Shown piece by piece: positions 258 to 29,300 of a DNA stretch of 29,313 bases. The translations under genes and the position numbers were made by a program. The stretch is from positions 1 through 29,313 of the forward strand of contig VRVR01000045.1 of NCBI GenBank assembly GCA_009859145.1. Direction: 5' to 3'. Within the stretch, counting starts at the first letter, position 1. Each line of letters opens with the position of its first letter. Below the pieces are notes generated by a model. The model saw only the letters and a program-made list of their open reading frames with translations, was not told the DNA's origin and did no database searches. The stretch is from Andalucia godoyi And28. Taxonomy: Eukaryota; Protista; Jakobida.

Positions 258-3200
258 TCACGACTGACAGAACTCTTGCATTCTGTTCACAAGAACGGCA
301 TCTGCACTGGTGCGTTTCTTCACCTCAAACAGACTCGGGAACTTATGATGCAATGCTTGGAAAAAGGTTCGCAAACGTCGCCGGCCCTCCGTGTCAAGCG
401 CTGGAATCGCAAGGGACGGATTCAATACATCGTTCAGAATACGTGCGCGGATTTGGAATAGTGCGGATCTGTTATGCAGCCGAGTATGGGATTCGACATG
501 AGTTGATTCTTTCAGGTAAATCGCTACCGGCGGCAACCACGACAGGACGTCTCCAATTGTCAGGTACAACGCCGTCAGCACAGCTTGCTGTAGACACACT
601 TGCAAACGCTCCCCGTCGGACAGATCCGCCAATGAACGCACGGAAACCAGCCAGTCGGGCGAGAAGGCGACGTGGTAGTGAAACTCTTTTTTGTCACGCT
701 TCTGGATAAACGATGCGCCGCCCCAGTCAATCAAACATATGGGAAACCGAGAGTCGCTTTGCACCTCCTGCAACAGCACCACATTCTGTGGACAAATGTC
801 CATGTGATGCACACCATTCTGGCTGCACTGTAGTATGATGCTGGTCAACTGCTGCAAAAGTTCCGTGCAAAAAGCGAGGGAGCGGTCCGGGTAACACGAT
901 GCAAGCGGCAACGGCACTCCTACAGGAGCAGTGCACAGAATTGCTCCATGATCGGACTGTTCAGAATGCAAGAGAGTGGGGACCCAGAAGCGACGACGGT
1001 CCCAGTCGATTCTGGAAAGCTCTTGGAGTGCACCCAGTTCGGTGGTCCACTCCGCGAGCTTCGATGCCGGAAAATACTTGACAACGACGGATGTTGTTGA
1101 ATCAAGAGTCGCGGTCGCTGGTTCCACAGCATCCATCTTCCCGATGCCATGGACCGGTGCACGCTGCAGCATTCCAGTCAATTCCAGTTTAGATGAACTG
1201 GAGAGTGAGCTCACGATTCCAGAAGAAAACATAGAGAGCGCTGGTTGCAGGGCTCCATTCCATCCGCACAAAGAATGAGGATCACTGGACAAGGAAAAGC
1301 AAAGACCTTTCATACCGTTCTCTTGCAGTGCAATTGGCACAATTTCCAGCAGTTCGCAGTCCCATCCAAACTCTAACGGATCAAAGACACACTGTGGCGA
1401 ATCTCCATCCAGTTATGGCGCAGGGAGTTGAGCGAACTGACGATCACATACAGGTGTGCAAAACTCCTGAATGAGTACTGCCATCGCATTGTCCACACCG
1501 CTTCGCTCTTTCAGTTCAAAAAGCGATGGAGCCACGTCTCTCAGCTGCTGGAAAAACAAGCGAAGAGGCCCAAGACCCTTCAAAACAGCCGTATCAAGTG
1601 AGGCATCCAGCAGATTACCGATGATGACTCTTCGAATCTTAAACAGGTCGTCCTTCGTTCGCACGCGTGTGTGCGAGTCCTGTTGCAGGTTCTTCTTATC
1701 AAGGACAATGGCCATTGGCGGTAGCCATGAAAGCACGTCGCCGAATGCAATGTACATTGTGGTCAGAATGGCTTGTTGCAGGCAAACCTGCAGTCGCTCG
1801 CCATCGGACAGATCTGCCAACGACGCCACTGCATCCAGCCAATCGGGTGAGAACGCAGAATGGTAGTGGAACTCATCGTCGCTCTTTTGCAAGAATGATG
1901 CACCGCCCCAGTCGATCAAGCATACAGGAAACATAAAATCATTGAGAGGTTCCGTCAGAAGCACGATGTTCTGCGGACAAATGTCCATATGGTAAATGCC
2001 CTTCTCGTGGCAATTCGCCACGATGGACGTCAGCTGCAGAAGGAGCTCGGTGCAATACTGAACCACACGGTCCGAAAAACAAGACGCAAGCGGCAACGGA
2101 CTTCCCACAGGAGCGGTGCATAGAATGCCGCCACGCTCGCACTGCTCGGAGAGCACAAGAGACGGCACCCAATACTTGTGAGCGCCCCAGTCGAGTCTTG
2201 AAATCTCGAGCAGAGCATTTCGCTCGGTTTCCATATCTGCGAGTTTCGAAGGGGGAAAGCTCTTCACGACCACTGGGGTCGACTGATCCACCAGACCTGT
2301 TGCAACCTCGACTGCATCCGGTTCTCCCACATCATGTACAGGTCCACGCTGTAGCATTCCGGTTAGCTCGACTTGGTGTGCAATTCGTAATGAAGAAACA
2401 ATTGCAGACGATGCTGCAGAGACAACAGGGGGAGCTTCTCCGTTCCAAGCACACAATGTATGAGAGTCAAACGACAACAACGTGCACAGCGCGTACAAAC
2501 CCTCGGTGTCCAATGTAACGGCATCAGTTTGAAAAAAATCATAGTCCCACCCTTTGCGCGTCTGCATAATGCGCAGATGCAAGAAGACGATCGACGTGCG
2601 GTTGCACGCAAATCCCCAGTACGAGCGCCGGCGTATGCCGCACTCTTCGACCATGTGTGCAAAGCGTTGGTACACTTGCCGAATAGCCTCCTCCAACTTC
2701 GCGTCCGCATGCTCGCCGCCAGATCCTTTAAGCTCTCCGACAACACAAGACTCAAAGTACGTGGGCAATCGCTTAGCAATTCGTCCTCGACAAAACAGCA
2801 AATCCACACGTTGGATCAGTCCATACAGAGCACTTCTCGAGAAGTCCACAAGGTGCACATCACCGTGTTTGGAGAGGAACCGAGTGAAAAACAGCCGAAA
2901 CTGATCTTGCAGCGGTGGTTCGGGGGAGTTGAGAGGTAAACTTCCAATCGTGTCATTCCACATGGATTGGAAATCATCCCAGTGCAAAGGAGCGGGAGCG
3001 GACGCGAACAGATGCTGGAGAGAGACCTTCGAAGTATGTAATTTTGTGCCGCGGCTGCGTGATGAGGACCCTACCGCCAACAAATCTTGAGATAATTTGG
3101 AGAGGAAATACTTGATATTCGACACCTCCTCTGCTGCTCGGGACTTCTTCGCTTGTTCCTCCGACTTCTTCGCTTGCTCTTCGGCAGCAAGTCGTCTTTG

Positions 3201-3284
3201 ATGCTCTGCCTCTTTCTCTAGGCTCAGCTGCTCGATCCGCTTGAGCAGCTTCTGGATCTCATCATTTGGATCAGGCGAACTCAT
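258..3284 (-). CDS. Coiled-coil / PD-(D/E)xK REase-like / tandem protein kinase-like protein (Crinkler/RHS-type effector architecture); 2 exons, join(1452..3284, 258..1391), about 988 aa
   Basis: ORFs 1413..3284 and 258..1340 are in the same frame, separated by one TAA that lies inside a 60-nt GTATGT...CAG intron. Both kinase copies have VVVK, a helix-C Glu, HMDICPQN and LIDWGG. The N-terminal part has RVDLLF...VVGELKG (REase-like) and an EEQAKKS coiled coil. The sequence upstream of the track's GTG start (GWDCELL) aligns with GWDYDFF in copy 1. Confidence 0.8.
1392..1451 (-). other. Predicted spliceosomal intron, 60 nt, phase 0, containing an in-frame TAA
   Basis: Minus strand reads cct|GTATGTgatcg...ataactgg...cgccaCAG|tgt. 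Removal gives the continuous reading ...QEFCTP-CVFDPLEFGWD... Confidence 0.8.
3142..3183 (-). repeat. Two near-identical 21-bp units encoding EEQAKKS in the kinase N-terminal coiled coil
   Basis: gacttcttcgcttg starts at 3142 and again at 3163. Confidence 0.75.
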
Positions 3285-3846: not shown

Positions 3847-5046
3847 TTATCCTGTACCTCGAATTCCATGAATTCTGTCGCCAACCAAAGAGAAAAGAAT
3901 GTCGGGAGGCATAGCTACAGTCTCGTTGTCGTTTCTGTAATAGTAGGAGGATCCGGGATTCGCGCAGTGAACAGTGCTACTCGGTGAAACGTCGATACGT
4001 ACGACAACTAATTCGTCAGGGCAGTTGGAAGTCATCAATTGAAGGAGGTCGCTGAGCTTTTTCTCAAGACTTTCGACGTAATGCCGTGTTTCTCCTGTTA
4101 GAACCAGGCCAGGTGGGCGAATAAGGCCGTTAATGCCGTTAGTTGCTTCATTCTGCAAGACCGTCACAGGATCAAATTCGACCAAAATGTCATTCAAGCA
4201 GGAGGGCATGATTGTTTGGCGTAAGCGCTCAACAATTTTGCGCTTCACTGCGTCGCGATCAGCAAATGGGATGTGGACACCCTGCACCACCGTCGAGTCG
4301 TGCACGCCAAGAAGCATTCTGCCTCCTCTGCAATTCAGAAACGCACAAACATTCTTCGGAACCATATTTTCTAAGTGGAATTGAAGACTCTCAGCAGACA
4401 TCGGATCCCACTCAATCTTGCCGCCTTTGCACTCCAGTTCATGAGACTCGTCCAGAAACAGTTTCATTCCTTTGACAAATATCAGTTCAGTTCCTGGAAT
4501 TCTTTTGAGAAGTGGACGAGCGTCAGCTTCCCTGGATATTGCGCATTTCTTCATCAGAGACAAGGCAAGTTTGTGCATCAGTTCTTTCTGGAGCACACCA
4601 GAACCAGCTTGGACTTCCGCAGATGCAATCACGTTGCCGTCGATCGACACGCTCCCAGCACAACTGCCCTCATTCATGTTCACATCCTGTCGAATGTCCA
4701 CGACATGTCCTTGCGACTGCAAGTTAACTCGTAACTGTTCCAACGCCGCAAGAGGAGTAAGCGATACTTCTGGTCTCTCAGAACTCGCATTTTTCAATGC
4801 CTGATGCAAAGCACAGATATTGTTCTTCACGACAAAATCTTCAAATGCCTTTTCTCGTGCCATCTTCTTTTTCACTTGTGGATTGTCACAGTATCCTGTC
4901 GCAAAACCCTCGACAGAAACCGTATACGTCCATTTCTTGGGTTCGGATTCATCACCGACTTCGGAAGTTTGCACGCCTTTGTCGATTTGTTGTGTGTATT
5001 CGTACGTCAATGCCACGGCATTCATGACTCCTGAAACCTCTGTCAT
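3847..5046 (-). CDS. Two dsRBD-like domains fused to a Schlafen/AlbA_2 domain, 399 aa
   Basis: ATG start. The C-terminal half has ESHELECK...KNVCAFLNCRGGRMLLGVHD...VQG (AlbA_2/Schlafen signature with ExxxxExK). The N-terminal KWTYTVSVEGFATG...KKKMAREKAFE and TPLAALEQL...GSVSIDGNVIASAE...KELMHKLALSL segments fit the dsRBD alpha-beta-beta-beta-alpha pattern. Confidence 0.75.
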   Translation of the reverse strand: MTEVSGVMNAVALTYEYTQQIDKGVQTSEVGDESEPKKWTYTVSVEGFATGYCDNPQVKKKMAREKAFEDFVVKNNICALHQALKNASSERPEVSLTPLAALEQLRVNLQSQGHVVDIRQDVNMNEGSCAGSVSIDGNVIASAEVQAGSGVLQKELMHKLALSLMKKCAISREADARPLLKRIPGTELIFVKGMKLFLDESHELECKGGKIEWDPMSAESLQFHLENMVPKNVCAFLNCRGGRMLLGVHDSTVVQGVHIPFADRDAVKRKIVERLRQTIMPSCLNDILVEFDPVTVLQNEATNGINGLIRPPGLVLTGETRHYVESLEKKLSDLLQLMTSNCPDELVVVRIDVSPSSTVHCANPGSSYYYRNDNETVAMPPDILFSLVGDRIHGIRGTG

Positions 5047-5384
5047 ATTGTCCTGTCGGCTTAGGTGTAGCTTGAATACACCTCTTCTGCAAACAAACTG
5101 ATTGGAATTGGTGAGAAAAGTTGAAATTTTAGCTATCTTTCTCGACCAGATGCGTGAAATCCAGGAGGAGCAAGATTTTTTGAATTAGAAGTTGATGGAA
5201 TTTGAGCGTAAAATACGTACGAGCAGCCTGACCCAGGAGATGCTCTTGCTGCCAATCATCCAAAAGCCAAGCAGCCAATTTCGACCCCAACAATTCAGAA
5301 TAGTTCTTTGATTTTGACCACGCGAGGCATTTGCCTTTCTGGACACTGCATAGTAGTGCCGGAACACAGAGAAACCAATCGGTG

Positions 5385-6275
5385 ATGGCCCGAGCAATCA
5401 ACTTGGAAGTACTGATTCTGGGCTTCGCGGGTTTCCGGTTCTTTAACAAGCTATTTTCCAATCGGCAGTATGGACAGCAGACTCCCTGGGTGACGCTCAT
5501 CTTGCTGGTCGTGTGTTTCTGGGTGTACATCCGAGACTTTGGACTGGCTCCTGTGGGAAGAGTTCCATTTGTTCCTGCTCTCCAGGAGAGCTTGTTTTGT
5601 CCATTTGTGATTGTAGACAGAATTGTCAAACAAAACTCACCCTCGTCGTCGTACCAGCATTACAACGGTCCCCATGGATCGTCATCTCATGGTATCTTCA
5701 ATTTCCTGGTTCCTGCATTCGGAGCCGTGTTTCACCATGCCCACGTTTTTCACTTGTTGTCGAACATGGGATCCTTGCTGCACAATGGTGTGATTTTGGA
5801 GGACACAAAAGGTTCTGTCTGGTGCATTATCATGTTCTTTGTCAGTGCTCCTTTGGTTGCAGCAGTGCACATCCTCCTTTCCATGCTCCTTCTGTTGTTC
5901 GCAGGGTACAATGAGTATCACAGTTGTGGCATCGGCCTCTCCGGCATTTTGTTTGCCATGCTCGTTGCTGTCGGTGCGCTGACATCGGGTTCGGAATTTT
6001 ATCACGGTAGACAATGCTTCTTTGGAATCCTGTACGTCCCCAACGTGTACGCAATCCTTGGCCAAGCTCTCGTCTTGACATTCTTAGACTCGCAAGTATC
6101 ATTCGTTGCACACGCATCGGGCTTCCTGGTTGGATTCTGCTATCTTTGGCTTTCTGGGCACTTGCATCTTCACGGCTACTTTACGACATCAGCAAGTAGG
6201 ACGCACAATGTGGACTCTGCACCACGACGGCGGCGGTACGTGATTCGGAATGGGAGGCTGATGTCATACGAATGA
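5385..6275 (+). CDS. Rhomboid intramembrane serine protease (RHBDL4/RHBDD1-like), about 296 aa from the first ATG
   Basis: Motifs PWVTLILL, FHHAHVFHLLSNM, catalytic GLSG (GxSG) and SFVAHASG (catalytic His), with multiple hydrophobic helices. The track start at 5331 is TTG; the first ATG is at 5385. Confidence 0.9.
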   Translation: MARAINLEVLILGFAGFRFFNKLFSNRQYGQQTPWVTLILLVVCFWVYIRDFGLAPVGRVPFVPALQESLFCPFVIVDRIVKQNSPSSSYQHYNGPHGSSSHGIFNFLVPAFGAVFHHAHVFHLLSNMGSLLHNGVILEDTKGSVWCIIMFFVSAPLVAAVHILLSMLLLLFAGYNEYHSCGIGLSGILFAMLVAVGALTSGSEFYHGRQCFFGILYVPNVYAILGQALVLTFLDSQVSFVAHASGFLVGFCYLWLSGHLHLHGYFTTSASRTHNVDSAPRRRRYVIRNGRLMSYE

Positions 6276-7886
6276 AGTGCCTGAAATCGTTACATACGTC
6301 ATCTGTGTATTTTTGACGATGCTGTGATGAAAAAAGTGTTCTCAAAGATAAGTTTTCCTTCATCGCATCATTATTTTGTTTTTTGTGTTTCATGTTTCGT
6401 ACTTCAACTGCATGTTCTAGCCATTCATCCGGATATGAAATGCTGTGAAGTAAACAATGGCCAATCGAATTTTCCATCATCAGTTCAAACGAGCGGACGG
6501 AACGCCGTCAAGATGGTTCAGAACCGAAGAGATTTCGAAGTCGCATGCTTGCAAATCATTGTCATGTTCCTCCTGTCTTTTTCCAACAGGAGGCGAGCTC
6601 TAGCACCGTAGCAAAGAAGCAAGATGTAAAGAAAACGATCAGGGGTTATTTGATTTCGAAGCATCGTGCTGTGTGTCCAGAACCGTGCTTTGGAGCGGAA
6701 AGTCGTGTTCGCGAACCTCGAAGGGCTTGATCCGTCGCCCGATCTGGACCCCGCGGGTCTTGCAAGGATGAACGGGTCTTCAGAGTATCTTCTGCGTGAT
6801 CTTGATGTGGAGTCTGTTGGGATGGTGCAGGTGCGGGAGAACGCTACTGATAAAGAAGAAACATGTCGAGTTTTGCAGTCGAGAAGTCCAGCTGAGAAGT
6901 GGCTTGCAGCAATGTACCAGTTCATTCGAAGAGTTTGAAAGTGAAAACCCATATTAGAAGGAACAAAACGGTTCACGCAGATAAAAGGCAACTGCAGATT
7001 ATGTCTGCTGTCACACTCCGTAAATGAAGAAGAGCGTTGCTCATGAAACATAAAGGATTGGCATGCGTGACTGTTCTCCAAGGTCCAGGTCGTTTTTCCC
7101 AAAAGAGCTCGCACCTTCATCTCGTCTAAGGAAGAGGAATTCGAAGAGGATGCAAGTGTGGTTGATATGCATGAATAAACCAGGAACCTCATCCCTTGAA
7201 TTGCATCCGGCACGAAAATGGCCCATGCGCGGAGTGGAATACGAAACAACGCCGTAATACAACATTAGGAACGGTTCTCGGACACTCGGCATGACCTGAA
7301 AAACAGCGTGACTTGGAACAAATGTTTTAGAAATGAATGGCAGTTTCGTTCTATACTTGCTAAAAAGGACTAAGACAGAAAATGGTTGCAACACAGAAAG
7401 CACTTCGACGAGATCCTGCGGAGACGATCTCGAGAGATGTTCCACATTACATTGGCAAGGCACTGAAACTGACTGCCGGCGTGCAATCCACAAATTCCGA
7501 CATTTCAGCTATGCGACAGTCATGAGCAATGAAATACTGACATCGGTGCTCACAATTCTATCATCAGAAACCGTGTGCCGGCAGCTCTTCTCATTAGTTT
7601 GTAAACAAGAACCACTTCTACACCGCGACGATCAATGAGTTGTTGAGAGACAAAGGAGTGACATGAGTAATTTGTTACTGTATTTCAGAAGACGAAGATG
7701 TTCCACGTCAGAAGAGCATTTGTAACAAATAAACCATGTCTCCTCAACATTCAAACAGTCCTTATTAACGTATTTAATCCATAACAATGATTCGTTTCTG
7801 GAGAAGAGGCAACGAACACTGACATTTCTAGATAATGCCACATACGCATATGAGATAGGAAAAGAACCAAAGAATATCCGGAATAT

Positions 7887-9197: not shown

Positions 9198-10202
9198 TTA
9201 ATAAAGTTCAAAAAAATTCGTCAACAACTGGCATGTAGTCCCATATCGAAAGGCCGAAAGAATATCTGCAATATCTGCAGCTAAACGATAACGAGCGGCA
9301 AGTCGCTGTTGTTCATGTTGTGTTTGCAATGGCACCTGCGGCTTAAACTTGGCAAACAAATCCACTTGCTGATCGTATGGATCGGCCAAACAGGAAAAGG
9401 AAACGCCCTTGAACAAACACAGAAGAGTACGAATGAGCACTCTTTCCTGCAGATAGCTGTTGTCGGCAAGAGGAAAATCGGCAATCGATGCCATCACTGC
9501 TTGCTTGACGGAAAATGAAGAAACTTGCCTCCAAAACGCACGTTTCTGCACATTTCGCAGATGCTTCACCGTACGAATCACGTCTTGAAAAGCAGGGAAT
9601 GACTGTCAAAAGAAAGAGCGTAAGATTCGATGATGAGGGTATACAAAAGCAGCAAAGAGACATACGCTGACAGCAGCGACGGTTGAACGATGCTCGTCGT
9701 CGAGATGACTATCGTCCCAGGCGCTGTCATTTTGCCGTGAAGGGACTTTCCATTTCCCATCCTTGAAAATTGCGGGCAGCAAGTCATACTCGAATTCTTC
9801 CGTGTCCACAACTTCGACAGACACGCGATTTCTGATCGCACTGTGAATTCCAACCTGTTCACGGACGAATGATGCAAACTGCTTCAATACGGTGCGGGAA
9901 GCCGGCTCTGGAGCAGAAGAGTCCAACATGATACGACAGAGTAGATCCACATCCGATCCAGAGGGAACGTCCAGGCCCTGAATCGAACTGCCGGCTAGCT
10001 TGATCCCTCCCGTCAACTTGTAATTCTTCTGAAGAAACTTTTTTGTCAATTTGCGCTCCGCAACAGGACGGCTGGGAGAAAGAATACGTCTCATGCGGTC
10101 TACGAGCTCGCTACGAGCTTGCTGTTGCTCGGGTCCCAGGCGAAGACGACTGGACACAGGCTTCGGACGCTCTCGAAGAGACTTCAAAACATCGATTGAC
10201 AC
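9198..10202 (-). CDS. cGAS/OAS/SMODS (CD-NTase)-like nucleotidyltransferase; join(9666..10202, 9198..9602), at least 313 codons, true start unresolved
   Basis: NTase motif LAGSSIQGLDVPSGSDVDLL (hGS-x11-DhD) and third acid in EYDLLPA. After the intron, FPAFQDVIRTVKHLRN...SSFSVKQAV...LADPYDQQVDL matches the OAS/CD-NTase C-terminal helical lobe pattern. The track start at 10202 is a GTG directly after an in-frame TGA; the first ATG is at 10094. Confidence 0.82.
9603..9665 (-). other. Predicted spliceosomal intron, 63 nt, phase 0, containing an in-frame TGA
   Basis: Minus strand reads gtcagc|GTATGTctctttgctgc...ctctttcttttgaCAG|tcattccct with a strong pyrimidine tract. It joins ORF 9606..10202 to ORF 9198..9581 in frame. 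Confidence 0.88.
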
Positions 10203-10430
10203 TCAATTTTGAAAGTCGTCGGCAAAGTCCCTACACTTCTTCAAGAACTCATCCACATGTTCTTCCACATTCTGAAAATCGTTTGCAAATCGGCGACACT
10301 CTTCTGAAAATGGCACCATTTTGTGAGGCTGCGATTTCGAGAAAACAAAATGTCGAGGCTTTGGTTTCTGGTCAGAAGAAACAGTCAACCGGGTCTTTTT
10401 CTCGGTGATTCGGACCCCGGTCTCTTTCAT
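10203..10430 (-). CDS. Short 75-aa ORF in frame with the NTase; possibly its N-terminal part
   Basis: ATG start. It contains an internal duplicated motif CRRFANDFQN / CRDFADDFQN, and its TGA is immediately followed by the NTase frame. Confidence 0.35.
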   Translation of the reverse strand: MKETGVRITEKKTRLTVSSDQKPKPRHFVFSKSQPHKMVPFSEECRRFANDFQNVEEHVDEFLKKCRDFADDFQN

Positions 10431-10518: not shown

Positions 10519-13500
10519 TTATTGTGACATGTAGCTACTCGCGCATCTCTTGAAGAAGTCCAGCGCATCGGAAGGCGGAAGAGCGATCCACGAATTCAGT
10601 AGCGCAATGTACGCCTCCTTGGTTGACCGATTTTCCTGTTTTCGAAGAAGACGCAGCACATCCGAATCGGGATCATTGGGAGCTGGAAACTTTGCGTCAA
10701 TATCCGGGCTTTGGAGAGAGGCAAGTATGACGCAAACATATCCCTGAAACAGTTCCATGAAACTGCTGTCATGCCACTTCTCCAGTGTCGTTTGAGAAGC
10801 AAATACAATTGCTGCTTGCTCGAATGCACACGAGGGTATCTGAAGTTTCAAATGATGTGCCTCCACATGGTTCACCATTTTCAAAACCTTGATGATAGCA
10901 CAAAAGCCCTTGTAAACATTGTTCAGTTCCTCTATGTTCCTACGCGCACCAACGTTCTGGGATACTTTGAAATCGCCATTTTTTCCATCCAGAAGTAGAA
11001 ATTTTCCAGCCAGAGTCTGCAAAGCGGGTAGCAAATCTACTTGAGCAATATCGGGGCTGTGTGGATCTCGAAGAGACACCGAGAATCGAATCTTGCCGTC
11101 AGTACGACAACTATCAACAACAACCGGTTTATGGCCTTTCGACTCCTCCTGAAGGACTTTCTTCAACGCATCGATAAAGAGGTTTCCGAGGAGTCTTACT
11201 TGCTCCGGGTTCACGGGTTGATTGACCGGAGAAGGCCAAGTTGCAACATTCTCTTGACCATCGTACTGGACACGCGTAGCGAGATTGGAGTTCAAGACTA
11301 CTACCACATCCATATCAGGATCGAACAGATTCGTTTGGTTCGCGATACTCCCACACAATACGGGTTCTGGAGTTAGGGTCAATGAGGGCAATTCTGTTGA
11401 ATGGGCTGAACGTAGCACAGCCCATATAGAACAAATCGCAATTCTTAGAGAATCAAAAAACCTGTTAAAACGGTGAAGCCGACTGTTCAGAATGCTTTCA
11501 TCTTGTTTGAGTTGGGACAAAAACTGCCACAAACCAGCATCCTCTCTGGTTTTCCCAATACGCGTAGAACTAAGCAAATTTTGTATTGCGTTCGAACTGT
11601 CTTCAAGAGAACGTGTTACGTGCTTCCGTGAATCAGCGTCTTGTAGTAAGGTCTCTGATCGAATGGACATGCGTTCTGAACCGGCGCCACTCAATGGAAC
11701 GCCAGAATACGGTGCAGAGTTCCCAGAAGGCATGGAGTTCGGATGCATCGGCTCTGGTTGCTTCGTCTTTGACCCTCCAACGATTCTGCGTGGTATTTGA
11801 GCCCCGCGAAACGCTCTTTCTTTCCATTGAAGAATCGATGAATCGTCGAATGGTTCGCCCTTGAAGACAATTTGGTGGAATTCACTGTTGGGGTGCGCAG
11901 CATGCAACTGTTCCAAAAGACCTCGAATTTCCATCCACCGAATTTCGCCATTCGACGTTCGAACCACCAAAAAAAAGAGCGAGGATGACTGACTCCAGTA
12001 TCGATGGTGTCGGAGGTTCCGGATGCGAAGTATTTCCTCGCCATTTGCTTTCGTGTGAAGATGTGAATCGCCCGATTTCAACTGCAGATAGACACGTTGA
12101 CCAGTGGCTTGATGACCATCGTTCTTAAACTCGATTTCCATGTCGATTCCGTGATCCGAAGTCGTGAGCTCGCGGCAGATCTGCCTGGCTTCCGACACCT
12201 TCGCAATGACTTCTCCCACAAGCACCCGTTCCTTGCTTTCATTATCCAGTGCATGGTTTGTTTGATCGTTCAGTTCCGCCACGCGCAAATCAATCTCAGG
12301 ATCAGCAAATTGCTTTTCAATATCATCTTCAAAAGGCATCTTCTCTTCGCACAATGGACAACAAATGTATGTCTTTCCAATCTCTTTCCTTTGTCGAGCG
12401 ATATCATTATCTGACGGTGATCCACAGGTGCACACATAATGGCGAATTCGCACAATGTCTTTTGCATTCTTCTGTTGAAGATGATTGTGAATGAACTGGC
12501 AAAACACAATCTTCTCGCCGATTTCAATCTCGGGATCGAAAAAGACCTCCAGCAACCCGTTTCGCTCCTCGGTACCAGGAGCCAGTTTGAATCCCATAAT
12601 CTTCGAATCACTTTTCTTCGATGAAAATTCAGCAGCACGCATCCAAAGCCCTTTCTTTTTGAACTCGCCTGTGTAGTGCATTCGGATGACCAGAGTTGAA
12701 TAAATGTCATCCGCAGGCCCCGAAAACAAATAGGAGACCAGCAAGGATGCACGGTGAACCAGTGAAGGAGGCTCCATTCGACACAAGGCCGGGAAATACA
12801 AGAACGTTGCATCTCCACGAATTGCTTCTCTCAAGCATATCGTCTGCTTGGTGAACGTATGGTCCAGGCCATGAAGCATCATCCGGTGCTCATGGTCCGA
12901 GACTGACACAGACAACTCGGCTCGATGAACAAAGTCACCGCGCAGCAAATCTTGGTGCGGAAAGCTTCCTCGTTGCTCAGGATCCGAAGACACTGCTTTC
13001 ACTAATTCTTGTCCATACTCGCTCATCAACGATGGACGCAGTAGATAGTACGATGCAAACTGCAGCGGCCATATCAGTCCAACAGCGCACATCATGTTCA
13101 CTACAGCTTTCACGCCGTCATCCGTGCATTGAACGGGGCCAAGACGACTCTTCATCTCGGAGAGCAACTCTTCCAGTGTGATCAGCGACTTTGTTTTCAC
13201 GTCGTCCTTGAAAGCCAGAATTTCCCTGCTTATGTGTTGATACCGATTCGAAGAGGAACTCCATGGAATGTTTTCCCAATTGATACGCTGAACGATTTCT
13301 TGCGAAAGTTCTGCACAGCCTGTGTTTTTCAGGGCACTGGTCTCGAAAATACAATCTACAAAGCCTCTCTTTCGAGCAACAGCAGCGACACTTTCCTTTG
13401 GAACACGCCATCGGCGTGCATCGCAACGACCAGCCACCAGAATCTTCGTTACTGGCTTGTCTTGCATCACGTATGAGACCAGTCGATCCCAATCCGAAAT

Positions 13501-15369
13501 CGTTTCGACAACATTCGATTTTTGAGGATCGACAACGAGGATCACCAAGGATGCGTCGTGCATGAAGAGCTGATGAATCAGCCGTTGATCTGCTTGCCCG
13601 CCAAAATCCCACAACAGAATCTCTCGTTGCGATGTCGAGTCGTTGTTCGAATGATTAGAGCTTAAAGGCCATCTTGTTGACCATGCGCCAACCGTCGAGC
13701 ATCTCCCTGGATCGAACTCATCGTTCGAGAGACGCTGCGCCAATCCCGTTTTTCCTGCCGAGGTGTCACCAACAATGAGCACTTTGGCATTCATGTAAAG
13801 ATGATCGTTACTTGCAGAAGAAGGATTGAAACCCGATCCTGAAGAGCTTTGAGCAAAAATGCTCGTTAAATCCCAATAGTGAAGTGTTGCTATGTTGGAA
13901 CACGAGATTAACTCATTCGGGTTGGTGAACGACCATGTTAAAGCCATCATTGGTGCAAGAGAATACATGGCTGCCAGAACAGAGCCTTGAAAAGCATTCC
14001 AAACGCGAATTTGAAAATTGCGATGACCAGACACAAAACGTGGATCATCCTGGGCATACCACAGAAGGCACAAAACCTCAGACTGAGATTCCAATATTCC
14101 CACCAACTTGTCGTTTTGTAGATCCCAATGGAAGATGCAAGAGGAGGATGCTTTCGACACGACAAGAAGATACCGTTCACAAGGACTCCACGAAACAACT
14201 AACGCTTCAATGGATGAACCCAACGGAAAAGGGCATCGGTGGACAATGCGGGCTCCATTCTCTGCCAAAACATCCCAAGCTACAATAGCGTCAGATGATA
14301 TGGACAACAGATGATGTCCATTCGAAGAACAAAGTAAGGATTGCACTTGAGAATGATGACCAAGCCGGCCCGAATTCACACAGGTCCAATTTTCTGCAGT
14401 GGGAAGCGACGCCACATAGAGTTGACCAATCTTGTCCATCCCATACACTCGATTGTTAAAGGCACATAAAGCAACGAAATCCGTAGGCATGGGTTCAGTG
14501 ACAAGTTTGCAGGAACTTTCTGAATCAAGCGCAGAAACCAGCACTAGGTTTGGTTGCTTCTCCATGAAACCCAGACGCTTGGACAGGAACAGACATTCTT
14601 CACGAGATAGCTTACCATGAGCAACAGATATTGGCACAGAAAGATCAGTTCGTTGAAGCTGAGGGTTCCGTAAAACACGGTGTTTTTCAGCAGATTCCCC
14701 AAGCAAAACAACAAACCACTGCCTTGCATCCTGGAAAAACAAATGCCTTCCATCGAACGAGAAATCTGCCTTCGTAGCACCACCAGACAGTTCTTCTGAA
14801 CAAAAAAGTACTGCCAAAGAACAGCTGATGAGTTGGGATGCAGCAAATGCAGCAGACACGGATATCAAGATTTCCCGTTCAATTTGAGAAGGTCGATTTG
14901 AAACATCGTAGAATTTGACGGTCAAGGCGTGGCGCATTGTCTTGGAACGTTCGTGAACTGGAAAAAATTCTGACAAGCTTTGCGGCAAGAAAGAAGCGAT
15001 AGGAAACTCGTTCACTTCTTTGCTGTCGGCAACTCGGAAAGGTTGCGCTTCGGCATCAAGGGTCTCGATAAACCGTCGAATTCGGACAGCAGATCGACTC
15101 TCATCCGAATAACCCCTGCTGACAAACACAACATGGATCACGTTCCTTTCGTTAAATTTTTCACTCGTGAAAGTCTGATGTATGAATTCTTTCAATGCGA
15201 TTTCATTCGACTCGTCCAACCGTTCATCAACGGCCACCCTATTGTGCCTGAACGAAGACAGGCTGTGCAATCGGATGAAACGGGCGCTTGTCGTCAGCAG
15301 TTCATAACCATTCTTGCTGCACAGCGACCACAAACTTAGAGCGTAGGGTCTCCCACTGAGGTCCGTCAT
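10519..15369 (-). CDS. 1616-aa Roco protein: N-terminal unknown domain - WD40 repeats - Roc GTPase - COR - Cys cluster - DUF4365-like nuclease fold - cGAS/OAS/SMODS-like nucleotidyltransferase
   Basis: Uninterrupted ATG-started ORF. WD40-like units at about 14500-13870 (LLCSSNGHHLLSISSDAIVAWD, VSGHRNFQIRVWN). Roc motifs from about 13794: GDTSAGKT, STVG, LWDFGGQ, LVAGRCD, FETSA. CTCG...CPLC at about 12430-12350. DHGIDMEIEFK...VYLQLKSG at about 12230-11800. NTase LCGSIANQTNLFDPDMDVVV, VDLLPA, IIKVLK...IPSCAFEQ, PAPNDPDSDVL at about 11480-10519. Confidence 0.9.
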   Translation of the reverse strand: MTDLSGRPYALSLWSLCSKNGYELLTTSARFIRLHSLSSFRHNRVAVDERLDESNEIALKEFIHQTFTSEKFNERNVIHVVFVSRGYSDESRSAVRIRRFIETLDAEAQPFRVADSKEVNEFPIASFLPQSLSEFFPVHERSKTMRHALTVKFYDVSNRPSQIEREILISVSAAFAASQLISCSLAVLFCSEELSGGATKADFSFDGRHLFFQDARQWFVVLLGESAEKHRVLRNPQLQRTDLSVPISVAHGKLSREECLFLSKRLGFMEKQPNLVLVSALDSESSCKLVTEPMPTDFVALCAFNNRVYGMDKIGQLYVASLPTAENWTCVNSGRLGHHSQVQSLLCSSNGHHLLSISSDAIVAWDVLAENGARIVHRCPFPLGSSIEALVVSWSPCERYLLVVSKASSSCIFHWDLQNDKLVGILESQSEVLCLLWYAQDDPRFVSGHRNFQIRVWNAFQGSVLAAMYSLAPMMALTWSFTNPNELISCSNIATLHYWDLTSIFAQSSSGSGFNPSSASNDHLYMNAKVLIVGDTSAGKTGLAQRLSNDEFDPGRCSTVGAWSTRWPLSSNHSNNDSTSQREILLWDFGGQADQRLIHQLFMHDASLVILVVDPQKSNVVETISDWDRLVSYVMQDKPVTKILVAGRCDARRWRVPKESVAAVARKRGFVDCIFETSALKNTGCAELSQEIVQRINWENIPWSSSSNRYQHISREILAFKDDVKTKSLITLEELLSEMKSRLGPVQCTDDGVKAVVNMMCAVGLIWPLQFASYYLLRPSLMSEYGQELVKAVSSDPEQRGSFPHQDLLRGDFVHRAELSVSVSDHEHRMMLHGLDHTFTKQTICLREAIRGDATFLYFPALCRMEPPSLVHRASLLVSYLFSGPADDIYSTLVIRMHYTGEFKKKGLWMRAAEFSSKKSDSKIMGFKLAPGTEERNGLLEVFFDPEIEIGEKIVFCQFIHNHLQQKNAKDIVRIRHYVCTCGSPSDNDIARQRKEIGKTYICCPLCEEKMPFEDDIEKQFADPEIDLRVAELNDQTNHALDNESKERVLVGEVIAKVSEARQICRELTTSDHGIDMEIEFKNDGHQATGQRVYLQLKSGDSHLHTKANGEEILRIRNLRHHRYWSQSSSLFFLVVRTSNGEIRWMEIRGLLEQLHAAHPNSEFHQIVFKGEPFDDSSILQWKERAFRGAQIPRRIVGGSKTKQPEPMHPNSMPSGNSAPYSGVPLSGAGSERMSIRSETLLQDADSRKHVTRSLEDSSNAIQNLLSSTRIGKTREDAGLWQFLSQLKQDESILNSRLHRFNRFFDSLRIAICSIWAVLRSAHSTELPSLTLTPEPVLCGSIANQTNLFDPDMDVVVVLNSNLATRVQYDGQENVATWPSPVNQPVNPEQVRLLGNLFIDALKKVLQEESKGHKPVVVDSCRTDGKIRFSVSLRDPHSPDIAQVDLLPALQTLAGKFLLLDGKNGDFKVSQNVGARRNIEELNNVYKGFCAIIKVLKMVNHVEAHHLKLQIPSCAFEQAAIVFASQTTLEKWHDSSFMELFQGYVCVILASLQSPDIDAKFPAPNDPDSDVLRLLRKQENRSTKEAYIALLNSWIALPPSDALDFFKRCASSYMSQ

Positions 15370-26312: not shown

Positions 26313-29300
26313 TTATCGCAAATCGACAACAAGCCGAACAGAGTCCAAGAAAGAAAGGGGGGAAAAAATGTCCGCTTGTGGATGGAAGTGGATGGCGGTG
26401 CTTGCTGCGCTCTTTGGGATTTGCGCAGAAGTATTGCGCCTGCAATGCTCATTCCAAACCGTCGTGATCGGCGGCAACCCCACGAGTGTCACACGAAGGG
26501 AATCTCCTTGAGCAAGAGCTGCTCCGAGAGGATTTGTCGGGGCAGGAAGCAAAGTTGCAGTCTTTTGGATGGAATGCGAGACTGGTGGTTTTTGCTGATG
26601 AGCAAAACGATGCACTGCGAGAGAGGTCAGGGAGGGAAGTTTTGTTGAAAAGCGATATTCGGATGCGGACCCTTGAACGGATGACGCGCCATCCGAACCT
26701 ATTGCTTGCGAGAAGGACGCCGGAGGACGCTTGGCAGGCATGATTTCCAATTGATTGAGATCTTGTTTCTTTGTAACCGCCAGTATTTTGTTGCCCAGCA
26801 CCAAGCCAATGCGCGCAACCATGAGCACCATCTCGAACAAGGAAACGACGAGGTTGATCGTCACGACAATCAGCTGAAACATTGCAACGAAATGCGTGAC
26901 ATCTTCGTTCCACGTATTTGAGCGTCCCTTTCCGAACATGGCGTACAGCGAAAACAGCTGAAGCAGATCGGAAGCCGAATTGAGCACATGCATTGCATTG
27001 GAAACCCGCTCTTCAGAAGGGTGTTCGTACAAGAAGAATATCGCTCGAGCAGTCGAGACACATGCAACGAAACAGAGCTGCACTTCAGTGCCAAGCCCAA
27101 GCTCTGCACCGGAGACGACGAAGAATGCATCGATGGCAAAGATAGTGATTGATCCAAGGTGCATCCACCAGTACTTTCCAACATAGACAAACAGCCCAAG
27201 ATCCACTTGTCGTGCAAACTCCGCCTCGGGACCGGAAGGTCCACGTCGGAGAAGCGGCATCAGACCGAAAAAGAAAATTGCACACTCTGTGAAAAGAACG
27301 AAAAATGCGAGGACTGTTTCCCAAGCGGGGCGGACGCGCATCCCCGCGGTCATCTGAACACCGATTGTGACGAGCAACGGATAAATCGAAGCGTAGAACA
27401 ACATAAAGTAAATTCCGCGAAAGAAAATCCAGAAACGGAAAAAGAGAGCTGATGGCTTACAACCAACATCGGAGGGACCGAAGGAAAACCGACGACGCAG
27501 CATGAGAAATGCAAGTGCGCATCCAAAAGATCCAACAAACAAAGTTGTGATGGCCATCAGCACTGTGAGCATCGTGGTGAACGTAAAAATAAAACAAGCG
27601 GAGTACGTCTGCATCGTGTCCATGAAGTACAACCGCAAGTTGGAATCCGACAGAGGATCGATGTCTGCATCATCCGGTGATTGGATCATACCGATGGACT
27701 CCCAAACGGACATCCGAACATTCATCATCACAACACTGAACCCTTGGATGAATTGCAAATACCAAATCGGAAATTGGAGTCGCAATGAGCCCAACCGGGT
27801 GATACTCTGCACTGAATCGAACATTTGCATAAATCCAGGTCCTCCTGCTGAGAGCCCAACACTGGTAGTAACTGCGGTTTTCCCATGCTCCGAGGAAACT
27901 ACTTCAAAAGCTGGAGCTTGAGGAATTCCGAGATCCACAATGGTAGACACATTGCAATGGCGTCCACGATGTGCATTGTCGCACAGACACGATCCTGTTG
28001 AGGAGCACGTTCCGTGATCATTGCAAGTATAAGTTCGATTGCAAAACACCGAGCAAGATGGTCCGTACATATTCGTCAAACAAGATGTGCAATTTGGGCC
28101 GGAAAACGGCTCAACACAGCTGCAAAGCCCAGAGCCATTCTTGCCATCCAAACAAGATCCACCATTGGCACAAACGCGACACTGTTGGCATTCGGGGCCC
28201 CAGAATCCGCTGAGACACTGGTTGCACGAAGATGCACCATGCACGGAGTTCGAGAAGGGAGTTTGACATGCTGTGCAACGGAATGTCGTGTCATTGGAAA
28301 ACCATCCAGGAAGGCAAGCGACACAGAATGCTCGACTCACATGCGACTCTGTTCCATTCGAACATTTCACACACTGCGACACGCTCGATACGTTCGAAAA
28401 CCATCCTTCGGGACACTGGCGACACGTGGTCCTGTCTGTGGATGATTCGTGCCCAACAGGACACGCCTGGCAAATGTAATTAACCGACGAATTTGAAAAC
28501 ATGCCAGGAGGACACAAGAAACACGAATCAGCCGACGCCGACGACTGGTGGCCAGCCGGGCACAGTTCGCACACTGACGAATTGGGTGCACCGCTCACCG
28601 TCGAGAATGTTCCGGCGGGACAATACTGGCACGTTGAACTGCTCGTTGCTCCAACGGCCGTGGAATACGTTCCAGGCGGACACTGGAATGCCGATTCTGT
28701 CGAATTCAGCCCAGACTGGTTCGAGTACAGCCCAGCTGGGAGATCGAGACAAGTGGTCGAGTTACTCGCTCCTGTTGTTGGAGAAAATGAACCAGCCGGG
28801 CACGGAACGCAGCTCGCAGACCCATTTGCACCGATTTCTGACGAGAATGTCCCTGAAGGACAAGCTGTGCATGCTGATGAATTTGACGCACCCATAACGC
28901 TCGAAAACGTCCCTGCATCGCAAGCAAAGCACAATGCTGAAGAATTGGAACCAATAATTGGAGAAAACGTACCAGAAGGGCATGCCAAACATGAAGCAGA
29001 AGAATTGGCACCTGTCAACGAAGAAAACGTTCCGGCCGGACAGCTTGTACACAACGAAGACGAGTTTGCCCCATCCACGTCGGAGAATGTACCAGCAGGA
29101 CACTCACTGCAAACCGACATTGCATTCGCACCTACGATCGCAGAGTACGATCCCAATGGGCACGTCTGACATGTTGAAGCATTCGATGCACCGAGTGCTG
29201 GAGAGAACGTCCCCGCAGGACACACCGTGCACATCGACGAATTTGCAGCTCCGGCTTCTGTGGAATACGTTCCGGCAGCACACGGCATACATACAGAAGA

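Follow-up and report, generated by a model that had tools for sequence, protein, structure and literature searches.

The gene described here, from the jakobid Andalucia godoyi, probably encodes a chimeric intracellular sensor-effector protein that is switched by a GTPase and combines a horizontally acquired bacterial core with a native nucleotidyltransferase (NTase) module. It occupies 10519..15369 on the minus strand of the window, the 29,313-nt stretch of DNA that was analyzed (contig VRVR01000045.1), and consists of a single ORF that begins with ATG and runs unbroken for 1616 codons and a stop codon. In DNA of 47% GC, this length is far beyond chance expectation, and the preliminary description was right to take the 4.85 kb as one ORF without an intron, with one frame kept throughout. 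From the N-terminus to the C-terminus, the protein contains an orphan region, divergent WD40 blades, a Roc-type GTPase, a conserved region at the position of COR, a zinc ribbon, a DUF4365 nuclease domain, a linker, and an NTase of the cGAS/OAS type. The catalytic motifs of its three enzymatic modules are intact, its core is bacterial, and its NTase has a separate, eukaryotic origin.

The core and its bacterial relatives

In a genome scan, at least 436 loci in bacteria, mainly Acidobacteriota, Verrucomicrobiota, Planctomycetota, Proteobacteria, and Cyanobacteria, matched the core (aa 329–1187) colinearly, with identities of up to 45%. An order of WD40, Roc, and DUF4365, which the preliminary description took to be bacterial, is thus indeed found in bacteria. 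In the usual bacterial architecture, one chain carries TIR-WD40-Roc-X-Zn ribbon-DUF4365; examples are HQZ67065.1, named “TIR domain-containing protein” (Planctomycetaceae MAG), and the loci numbered L001–L080, among them those of Magnetospirillum fulvum (NZ_FNWO01000008.1) and Bradyrhizobium sp. LTSP885. By tblastn, the window shared 38–45% identity with 80 loci, and a Planctomycetaceae group was more distant (30–32%). A word-indexed search with the full-length sequence returned only five Planctomycetaceae relatives (27–30% identity); the genome scan gave far closer ones. The bacterial profile matched aa 518–1187 of the window protein by hmmsearch with an E-value of 2.4e-116, and 106 of the 135 columns that are at least 95% conserved in bacteria were kept, including all columns of the G motifs, the zinc ribbon, and the nuclease motifs. 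WD40 repeats were present in 61 of 62 bacterial relatives and the TIR motif in 50 of 62, with a TIR_2 match of 2.5e-31 in a bacterial relative. The terminal domains of the bacterial proteins matched Thoeris/SPARTA TIR models and, at the C-terminus, the PADLOC Aga_REase models of short-Argonaute REase defence. We found no eukaryotic relative of the core, and a core tree, built by neighbor joining, midpoint-rooted, and with a long window branch and no statistical support values, indicated nesting among bacteria.

In position, the bacterial TIR domain and first WD40 blades are replaced here by an orphan N-terminal region (aa 1–328, 14386..15369, minus strand, as for all features below). This region was not recognized by any Pfam model, TIR included, and it matched nothing when compared with the bacterial TIR-WD40 profile, with the other parts of the window, and with all proteins collected in the analysis. 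It is followed by divergent WD40 beta-propeller blades, the presumed sensor (aa 329–503, 13861..14385), where the WD40 repeats noticed earlier were recovered by a profile of the N-terminal parts of the bacterial relatives with an E-value of 1.5e-18. About four blades were detectable, and several beta-propeller Pfam models matched aa 337–502, every one of them below its curated cut-off. Because only about four WD40 blades are recognizable and aa 1–328 are an orphan region, the sensor part may be degenerate.

The Roc-type small GTPase (aa 526–700, 13270..13794; Pfam Roc, 2.4e-20) shares its motif residues with the bacterial relatives. PF08477 scored 73.4 bits (cut-off, 27) over aa 529–650, and the Ras model scored lower, at 59.8 bits. 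The G1 motif, or P-loop, is GDTSAGKT (G534–T541, nt 13747–13770), followed by T559, the G3 motif DFGGQ (588–592), and the G5 motif SAL (678–680). At G4, however, the sequence is GRCD (647–650) rather than NKxD, and D650 alone is retained (xxxD), as in the bacterial relatives. The statement that all Roc G motifs are present therefore holds for G1, G3, and G5 but is slightly overstated for G4, and guanine specificity is not assured because G4 is non-canonical.

In Roco proteins, COR is the module of dimerization and, together with Roc, defines the family. The window protein has a conserved 275-aa region at the corresponding position (aa 701–975, 12445..13269), colinear with the bacterial relatives at 30–39% identity. 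The stretch of COR length after Roc that had been noted is thus real, but no sequence method gave a COR signal: the COR-A and COR-B Pfam models did not match the window protein or any of 66 bacterial relatives at E ≤1, profiles of this region from 6 and 67 sequences matched neither a Roco protein nor any other entry in the PDB, and two hhalign comparisons of the middle region with a genuine COR region gave a probability below 1%. The region is rightly placed for a COR domain, and its identity as COR is unproven at the level of sequence.

A zinc ribbon follows (aa 976–1012, 12334..12444), with C980-x-C982 and C1004-xx-C1007 and a weak match to the GRF zinc ribbon. The CxC...CxxC pattern had been seen in the first reading, and the ribbon is conserved in the bacterial relatives, where C980, C982, and C1004 fall in columns that are at least 95% conserved. 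The last domain of the core is DUF4365, a DREN-type PD-(D/E)xK nuclease (aa 1043–1187, 11809..12243; Pfam DUF4365, 5.4e-14), previously described as a DUF4365-like segment with DHGID and QLK. The assignment was confirmed by PF14280, which scored 52.9 bits (cut-off, 24.3) over aa 1059–1156, and by the catalytic-motif columns. When these were compared with the bacterial relatives, D1072 and D1076 of DHGID (1072–1076, nt 12142–12156), E1078, E1080, and Q1096 and K1098 of QLK (1096–1098, nt 12076–12084) were all retained. Q-x-K is the active site proposed from alignment and was mutated for the inactive control in a study of a DUF4365 nuclease that acts with a short Argonaute (PMC10810196). The DUF4365 domain of SPARDA is a collateral DNase that is switched on by target recognition or filament formation (PMC10810196; PMC12205087). 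A six-sequence DUF4365 profile gave no sequence match among solved structures, SPARDA entries included.

The C-terminal nucleotidyltransferase and the fusion joint

The C-terminal domain (aa 1263–1616, 10522..11583) is an NTase like those of cGAS, OAS, and the CD-NTases, identified from a family alignment, a PDB profile, and AlphaFold2/Foldseek. Its catalytic motif comprises GS (1340–1341) with D1352 and D1354 (nt 11308–11352), and the third acidic residue is D1445 (nt 11035–11037). In an alignment of 20 family members, GS, D1352, D1354, and D1445 were invariant or at least 90% conserved; K1497 is also listed among the residues of the domain. The profile of these 20 sequences matched OAS1 (E-value, 7e-6) and CdnE (E-value, 2e-5) in the PDB. 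The AlphaFold2 model had a pLDDT of 90.4 and a pTM of 0.84 and showed the bilobed cGAS/OAS-type fold, with an NTase core and a C-terminal helical lobe; modeling from the single sequence gave a pLDDT of 35 and was unusable. The top 50 Foldseek matches, at a probability of 1.00, were all cGAS, CD-NTases (CdnB/C/D/E), cGLRs, MiD49/51, OAS1, or DncV; the best E-value was 7.6e-10 (cGAS), and the whole-domain TM scores were 0.5–0.63 to cGAS, CdnB/C/D/E, cGLRs, and OAS1. Motif, profile, and fold thus agree with the preliminary description of a C-terminal NTase with intact acidic residues.

Standard models did not recognize this domain. None of the SMODS, OAS1_C, and Mab-21 Pfam models matched it, and NTP_transf_2 did so only at an E-value of 0.22; Pfam, NCBIfam, and PADLOC returned nothing useful for the C-terminal 417 aa, and phmmer found no match for the C-terminus in the PDB. 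A word-indexed search of 5.8 billion proteins found nothing with the C-terminus and only one fragment with the family alignment, and the family was recovered by an exhaustive HMMER search. It forms a distinct branch without a curated model, is marked by a conserved helix motif of its own at the N-terminus (G..ED..LW.FA.QL), and has so far been seen in protist and metagenome sequences only, in the architectures LRR-Roc-COR-NTase, NTase-GBP-TPR, NTase-kinase-NHL, and as a stand-alone protein. The idea that a downstream NTase-like gene is closely paralogous to the C-terminal domain was considered and rejected, the similarity being at the level of motifs only; the neighboring NTase-like gene has an in-frame TGA.

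Between the nuclease and the NTase lies a Pro/Ser/Gly-rich linker that includes the fusion joint (aa 1188–1262, 11584..11808), where the homology switches. Bacterial homology stops at aa 1185–1187, and from aa 1189 to aa 1616, the protein is 65% identical over 429 aa to the C-terminus of ANDGO_05994, another Roc protein of A. godoyi. Beyond the GIDxExEF motif, 79 of 80 bacterial ORFs end within 110–137 residues, whereas the window protein runs on for 542 aa, and the stop codon of the nearest metagenomic relative aligns to approximately aa 1196. Because the bacterial ORFs stop after DUF4365 and the homology to ANDGO_05994 begins at aa 1189, the joint is placed at the ancestral bacterial stop codon. 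In a metagenome scan with aa 1040–1616, all 28 relatives matched the DUF4365 part only, and a scan with a four-sequence alignment for further fusions gave no confirmed match. Full-length bacterial homologues that already carry the NTase, which the preliminary description had allowed for, were thus not found, because 79 of the 80 loci stop after the nuclease and the 28 metagenomic relatives match DUF4365 alone.

These comparisons support the earlier view that a horizontally acquired bacterial protein gained an NTase, and they support a different origin for the C-terminal part, put previously at about 320 aa and here at about 350 aa, which belongs to a protist family. The NTase was not invented at this locus; it was taken, together with the linker, from a family in which coupling to Roc/COR and GBP GTPases already existed in protists.

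Proposed mechanism and alternative readings

In the explanation that we consider probable, the core would descend from the bacterial TIR-WD40-Roc-X-Zn ribbon-DUF4365 single-chain family by horizontal transfer into the jakobid lineage, long enough ago for its composition to have become fully host-adapted. The TIR end would have been lost in the eukaryote or replaced by the orphan segment, and read-through of the old stop codon would have joined the nuclease to a linker and OAS/cGAS-like NTase copied from the native Roc-NTase gene family, with ANDGO_05994 as the paralogue. A foreign or stress-associated ligand would bind to the WD40 propeller, possibly with the participation of the orphan N-terminus, and recognition would alter the nucleotide and oligomeric state of the Roc switch. 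Assembly would bring the DUF4365 nuclease domains together, as in SPARDA, leading to indiscriminate degradation of nucleic acid, and the NTase would concurrently become competent to convert NTPs into a signal, either a 2'-5'/3'-5' oligonucleotide or a cyclic nucleotide. We infer the ligand, the direction of signaling, the NTase product, and any immune role. Within the window, no STING, SAVED, CARF, or RNase L-like signal receptor was seen.

The direction of signaling could also be reversed, with the NTase as the input. It would then bind foreign nucleic acid in the manner of OAS or cGAS, a GTPase-gated signal or conformational change would trigger the nuclease, and the WD40 part would serve in assembly or partner binding. 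OAS1 and cGAS, which have the closest solved structures, are themselves direct nucleic-acid sensors, and the WD40 part is eroded in this protein. Moreover, the “effector” position at the end of the chain is not obligatory for the NTase, because the same family includes proteins in which it lies N-terminal to GBP-type GTPases or kinases. The bacterial ancestors, however, have no NTase, and their WD40 repeats are the sole plausible sensor; we regard this reversed order as rather unlikely.

The gene may alternatively be a relic with partly dead domains, either a transferred gene in decay or one re-used outside immunity in membrane traffic or signaling, like other Roco or MiD51-type proteins, with the NTase fold acting only as a nucleotide-binding adaptor. 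Such a history would account for the loss of TIR, the degraded WD40 part, the non-canonical G4, and the orphan aa 1–328, and it is consistent with the presence of the non-catalytic MiD49 and MiD51 among the structural matches and with the in-frame TGA of the neighboring gene. Against such a relic stand catalytic residues that are intact in all three enzymatic modules, the retention of the 106 highly conserved core columns, an NTase acidic triad that varies little or not at all among the family members, and an ORF that is intact across 4.85 kb, and we consider a relic improbable.

The surroundings of the gene are those of a eukaryotic genome. Four neighboring ORFs match EukProt entries exactly, and one falls into a cluster with A. 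godoyi ANDGO_07768 at ≥90%; a 63-nt spliceosomal intron (GTATGT...CAG) interrupts the gene immediately downstream, and neighboring genes encode EGF/ephrin-receptor-like repeats. The 1616-aa product is absent from a collection of 15 billion proteins that contains the products of the four neighbors, and the published annotation may therefore omit the gene or call it differently. This absence, and the fact that the DUF4365-NTase join occurred in no other database sequence among the bacterial ORFs and the metagenome scan, would fit two genes, or contaminating bacterial DNA and an NTase gene, joined in silico, but such an artefact is very improbable, since the reading frame runs through the joint unbroken, the same ORF contains eukaryote-specific sequence on either side of the core, the C-terminal flank resembles an A. 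godoyi protein in which the linker and NTase likewise follow a Roc GTPase, and the neighbors are eukaryotic. A chimeric assembly was rejected. Bacterial contamination was rejected because the flanking genes are those of A. godoyi and the core agrees with host genes in GC, GC3, and codon usage, and a best bacterial identity of only 45% is incompatible with recent contamination.

Relation to known systems and significance

The closest comparison is with the uncharacterized bacterial chains, which have the same GTPase motifs, zinc-ribbon cysteines, and nuclease motifs. They begin with TIR, carry seven clear WD40 repeats, and stop after DUF4365, whereas the window protein has no TIR, an orphan N-terminus, and 429 additional C-terminal residues. 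The Roco proteins (LRRK2, DAPK1, the Dictyostelium Rocos, and the Chlorobium tepidum Roco) likewise place a Roc G domain between N-terminal repeats and a C-terminal enzymatic output; in the window protein, however, the output is not a kinase and G4 is degenerate, and COR is undetectable in it and in the 66 bacterial relatives. The DREN/DUF4365 nuclease of SPARDA belongs to the same Pfam family and has the same Q-x-K motif, but here the nuclease has neither an APAZ domain nor an Argonaute partner and is joined to a GTPase.

The NTase shares the Pol-beta core with GS, DxD, and D with the cGAS/cGLR/OAS/CD-NTase superfamily, from which its family is set apart by its own N-terminal helix motif and by the failure of the superfamily’s Pfam models to match. 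An NTase of this family also lies C-terminal to a Roc GTPase in ANDGO_05994 and in P0021, an environmental protein of LRR-Roc-COR-NTase architecture; both, however, lack a DUF4365 nuclease, and neither has an N-terminal part related to the bacterial core. The STAND/NLR proteins and Avs sensors may share a tripartite logic of repeat sensor, NTPase switch, and effectors with the window protein, and NLR-like logic with two outputs, as suggested in the preliminary description, is what we infer for it. The likeness does not go beyond logic: a Ras-like GTPase, not a STAND ATPase, serves as the switch, and no NACHT or NB-ARC match was found when the window protein was scanned with Pfam, NCBIfam, and PADLOC.

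Each of these modules is already known as a building block of immunity, in bacterial chains of TIR, WD40, GTPase, and nuclease domains and in the cGAS/OAS-type synthases of animals and bacteria, and it is likewise established that eukaryotes have acquired defence genes from bacteria (PMC10732462). What is new here is a dated, base-level case of a eukaryote rebuilding a bacterial defence protein, with the joint at the old stop codon, a module taken from a paralogue in the same genome, and TIR dropped. Also new is a family of OAS/cGAS-like synthases that has repeatedly been fused to GTPases (Roc, Roc-COR, and GBP) in protists; we found no description of such a family in the literature searched, and no Pfam model matches it. 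It is possible, although we put this forward only tentatively, that the present gene, ANDGO_05994, the environmental LRR-Roc-COR-NTase, and the NTase-GBP proteins represent an unrecognized immune family of protists in which Ras- or dynamin-like GTPases gate a second-messenger synthase of the OAS/cGAS type. In this gene, the synthase would have been joined to an abortive-infection protein that came from bacteria by horizontal transfer, so that one polypeptide of a deep-branching eukaryote would combine a collateral nuclease with a nucleotide signal as its two outputs. The physiological logic of Roc-type GTPases is still debated because of LRRK2. If it is true that the GTPase gates the synthesis of a nucleotide signal, this mode of regulation would be without known precedent in cGAS, OAS, or the CD-NTases, and it would provide a simple enzymatic read-out for Roc-type GTPases.

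Domain composition and bacterial relatives of the ORF

The ORF at positions 10519–15369 (minus strand) is unbroken, with an ATG start and 1616 codons. Pfam searches identified a Roc GTPase (aa 529–650; PF08477, 73.4 bits) and a DUF4365 domain (aa 1059–1156; PF14280, 52.9 bits), and several beta-propeller/WD40 models matched aa 337–502, each under its curated Pfam threshold; only about four WD40 blades are discernible. Residues 1–328 had no match to Pfam, to a bacterial TIR-WD40 profile, or to the other proteins compared, and no Pfam, NCBIfam, or PADLOC model matched the last 420 residues. The motifs named in the preliminary description were found in the sequence, except that its full set of Roc G-motifs has to be reduced: G1 (GDTSAGKT, 534–541), G3 (DFGGQ, 588–592), and G5 (SAL, 678–680) are present, but G4 is degenerate, with GRCD instead of NKxD. 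The others are the cysteine motifs CTC (980–982) and CPLC (1004–1007), the DUF4365 motifs DHGID (1072–1076) and QLK (1096–1098), and the NTase motifs CGSIAN (1339–1344), DPDMDV (1350–1355), and VDLLPA (1444–1449). The 1616-aa product was absent from a collection of 15 billion proteins, unlike the products of four nearby genes, which are present there as exact EukProt entries, and none of the protein searches returned a near-identical protein; the gene was probably left uncalled in the published A. godoyi proteome.

The 275 residues following Roc, previously read as a COR region, are conserved with bacterial relatives. Pfam COR-A and COR-B matched neither the target, nor one bacterial relative, nor any of 67 aligned sequences; profiles of the region built from 6 and 67 sequences retrieved no Roco protein and no other entry from the PDB; and hhalign comparison with a genuine COR region was negative. 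COR is therefore unproven here, and only the Roc domain justifies the label "Roco." When a profile of the Roc-to-DUF4365 part was compared with the PDB, the top matches were Rab29/32/38-type GTPases, with significant matches confined to the G domain.

An initial search found only five relatives (1154–1191 aa), from Planctomycetaceae-type metagenome bins, one titled "TIR domain-containing protein." These are colinear with target aa ~337–1185 at 27–30% identity and end there, and their profile matched target aa 518–1187 (E 2.4e-116). When an alignment of the Roc-to-DUF4365 segment was used to scan prokaryotic genomes, one for each species, at least 436 bacterial loci came to light, the best with 45% identity across the entire 670-residue module, in Acidobacteriota (Pyrinomonadaceae, Blastocatellia, and Thermoanaerobaculia), Verrucomicrobiota, Planctomycetota, Proteobacteria (e.g., Magnetospirillum fulvum and Bradyrhizobium), Cyanobacteria, and others. 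Eighty of these loci entered the architecture and distance analyses, and in 79 the ORF stops 110–137 residues past the GIDxExEF nuclease motif; in other words, DUF4365 is terminal. WD40 repeats precede Roc in 61 of 62 loci, and a TIR motif lies at the extreme start in 50 of 62 (TIR_2 in one relative, E 2.5e-31). From these stops and counts, the usual bacterial architecture is TIR-WD40(7)-Roc-X-Zn ribbon-DUF4365, of ~1120–1160 aa, in agreement with the earlier view of WD40-Roc-DUF4365 as a bacterial arrangement. The sole exception of the 80, in an uncultured Verrucomicrobiota MAG (L076:5539–8898), carries an AAA/OLD-like ATPase segment (GENGTGKST ... IDEMDLHLHP) after DUF4365, in an ORF that runs off the contig end, and no NTase, so that none of the 80 bacterial homologues has the NTase; this extension shows C-terminal additions being tried out in the bacterial family as well. 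PADLOC contains no whole-protein model for the TIR-WD40-Roc-DUF4365 family, and the two ends of the bacterial protein matched models of defence effectors, namely the TIRs of ThsB and SPARTA at one end and a short-Argonaute REase at the other. Among the bacterial relatives, 135 columns reach at least 95% conservation, and the target retains 106 of them, including the P-loop, T559, D588/G591/Q592, D650, and T677-S678-A679 of the GTPase, C980/C982/C1004 of the Zn ribbon, and D1072/D1076/E1078/E1080/Q1096/K1098 of the nuclease. The ancestral bacterial TIR is missing from the target, a loss that the preliminary description had not included.

Origin of the nucleotidyltransferase and position of the joint

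An exhaustive HMMER search with aa 1240–1616 found 31 relatives, whose known sources were protist proteomes or transcriptomes (EukProt, MMETSP) or metagenomes. The closest, A. godoyi ANDGO_05994 (68% identity, 1162 aa), has a Roc-like GTPase at its N-terminus. The NTase is C-terminal in an environmental LRR-Roc-COR-A protein (P0021); it is N-terminal in P0018 and P0025, where a GBP-type GTPase and TPRs come after it, precedes a kinase and NHL repeats in P0022, and is accompanied by NHL repeats only in P0015. Many family members are stand-alone proteins of 340–420 aa. The contig of P0021 (L081, locus 4497–7796; contig GC 0.46) also codes for a Ulp1 protease.

In a 20-sequence alignment, G1340, S1341, T1346, D1352, D1354, N1360, D1445, G1488, L1496, K1497, W1532, and F1537 were invariant or nearly so; among them are the G-S, D-x-D, and D residues by which pol-beta-type nucleotidyltransferases are recognised. 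Compared with all PDB sequences, the family profile matched OAS1 (1px5, E 7e-6) and CdnE (6e0k, E 2e-5). AlphaFold modelling was poor from the single sequence, whereas with the alignment it reached pLDDT 90.4 and pTM 0.84. The best 50 Foldseek matches of this model in the PDB (probability 1.00, E to 7.6e-10, TM to 0.63) were only cGAS, CD-NTases (CdnB, CdnC, CdnD, CdnE, CdnG, and DncV), cGAS-like receptors, MiD49/51, and OAS1. In a viral structure library, the sole strong match was an uncharacterised giant-virus (Hyperionvirus) protein (E 3e-7), with squirrelpox OAS far weaker. The profile and Foldseek matches, the protist relatives, and ANDGO_05994 bear out the earlier assignment of the C-terminal domain to the cGAS/OAS-like NTases and give it an origin apart from that of the core, in eukaryotes. 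Its source needs amendment, in that it came from a pre-existing protist GTPase-NTase family.

The homology to bacterial proteins stops at aa 1185–1187, and 65% identity to ANDGO_05994 extends from aa 1189 to the final residue, including the Pro/Ser/Gly-rich linker. Among metagenomic relatives, the one nearest to the nuclease part (L082) is 47% identical over aa 951–1196, and its stop codon falls at ~aa 1196 in the alignment. These boundaries and this stop place the fusion of the eukaryotic module at the ancestral stop codon or no more than a few codons from it. A metagenome scan with aa 1040–1616 matched the DUF4365 part alone in 28 of 28 relatives, and the collections searched contained no second instance of the DUF4365-NTase join. 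Apart from the linker and NTase, the target and ANDGO_05994 share only P-loop-level resemblance, and the linker-NTase module has moved between two different Roc proteins.

Probable transfer of the core and its genomic setting

The target is 38–45% identical to the 80 bacterial loci, which have a median identity of 57% to one another; the Planctomycetaceae group is farther from it (30–32%). A midpoint-rooted neighbour-joining tree placed the target as a long branch within a 49-member bacterial clade. In GC, GC3, and codon usage, the core (aa 329–1187) matches genes native to the host, and searches of limited sensitivity found no eukaryotic relative of it. Taken together, the distances, tree, and composition indicate an old bacterium-to-eukaryote transfer, consistent with the horizontal acquisition proposed earlier; contamination is ruled out by the host-like composition and the only 38–45% bacterial identity.

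The window belongs to the nuclear genome of the jakobid A. godoyi (genome paper, PMC7050145), because it contains eukaryotic-type neighbour ORFs (ephrin-receptor-like/EGF repeats, RNase III, rhomboid, Schlafen-AlbA_2, and kinase-like), EukProt and ANDGO matches, and a spliceosomal-type intron. This intron (63 nt, GTATGT...CAG, 9603–9665) lies in a second NTase-like gene (9198–10430, minus strand), 88 nt downstream of the target stop codon on the same strand, with GS...DxD...D motifs; it resembles SMODS (E 4e-4) and CdnD (E 0.18) only weakly and below threshold. Because an in-frame TGA (10203–10205) cuts off a segment of 75 codons, which has an ATG start, from the part with the catalytic motifs, this gene may be a pseudogene, undergo read-through, or start at an internal ATG. 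At 3847–5046 (minus strand), ~5.5 kb from the target, a 399-aa ORF has a Schlafen AlbA_2 domain (E 1.4e-11), and together with the two NTase genes it may form a small cluster of immune-type genes. Two neighbouring ORFs at 258–3284 (minus strand) partially match protein kinases. One of them, of 623 aa, shares at least 90% identity with A. godoyi ANDGO_07768 (516 aa), pointing to a kinase-like family that duplicated recently. A 991-aa cysteine-rich ORF (26313–29288, minus strand) probably encodes a surface protein, with at least 10 ephrin-receptor-like repeats alongside NCD3G, TNFR-like, and EGF modules.

Possible mechanism and significance

In accounts of SPARDA short-Argonaute systems, DUF4365 is described as a collateral nuclease activated by target recognition and higher-order assembly (PMC10810196; PMC12205087). 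Its Q-x-K, a proposed, alignment-derived active site mutated for an inactive control (PMC10810196), corresponds to Q1096/K1098 of the target. Roc-like "AP-GTPases" are rare components in surveys of bacterial conflict systems (PMC7159879). The bacterial parents, with TIR, a WD40 array, a GTPase, and DUF4365, have the layout of a protein that unites sensor, switch, and effector in one chain, and the most economical reading is that the target is such a machine with one effector exchanged. The WD40 region, perhaps with the orphan N-terminus, would act as the sensor, Roc as a switch that depends on nucleotide or as a module for assembly, and DUF4365 as one output; the OAS/cGAS-like synthase could be a second output or a second nucleic-acid-sensing input. 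Because other protists, too, have this NTase family beside GTPases of the Roc, Roc-COR, and GBP types, its coupling to GTPases is argued to be functional rather than accidental. Nothing in the window was recognised as a candidate receptor for a nucleotide signal.

A survey of eukaryotic CD-NTases describes the cGLR, OAS, and eSMODS superfamilies and several bacteria-to-eukaryote transfers (PMC10732462); jakobids, Discoba, and Andalucia are absent from its text, and the portion available describes no GTPase fusion. A full-text literature search of incomplete coverage, such that an earlier description is possible, returned no fusion of Roco with a nucleotidyltransferase, cGAS, or OAS. With the corrections concerning COR, G4, the lost TIR, and the NTase source, the original observation is real and its interpretation essentially right. 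The target is a novel combination of known parts, a precisely resolved case of a eukaryote re-engineering a bacterial defence protein, and a way into a GTPase-coupled OAS/cGAS-like family not yet described.
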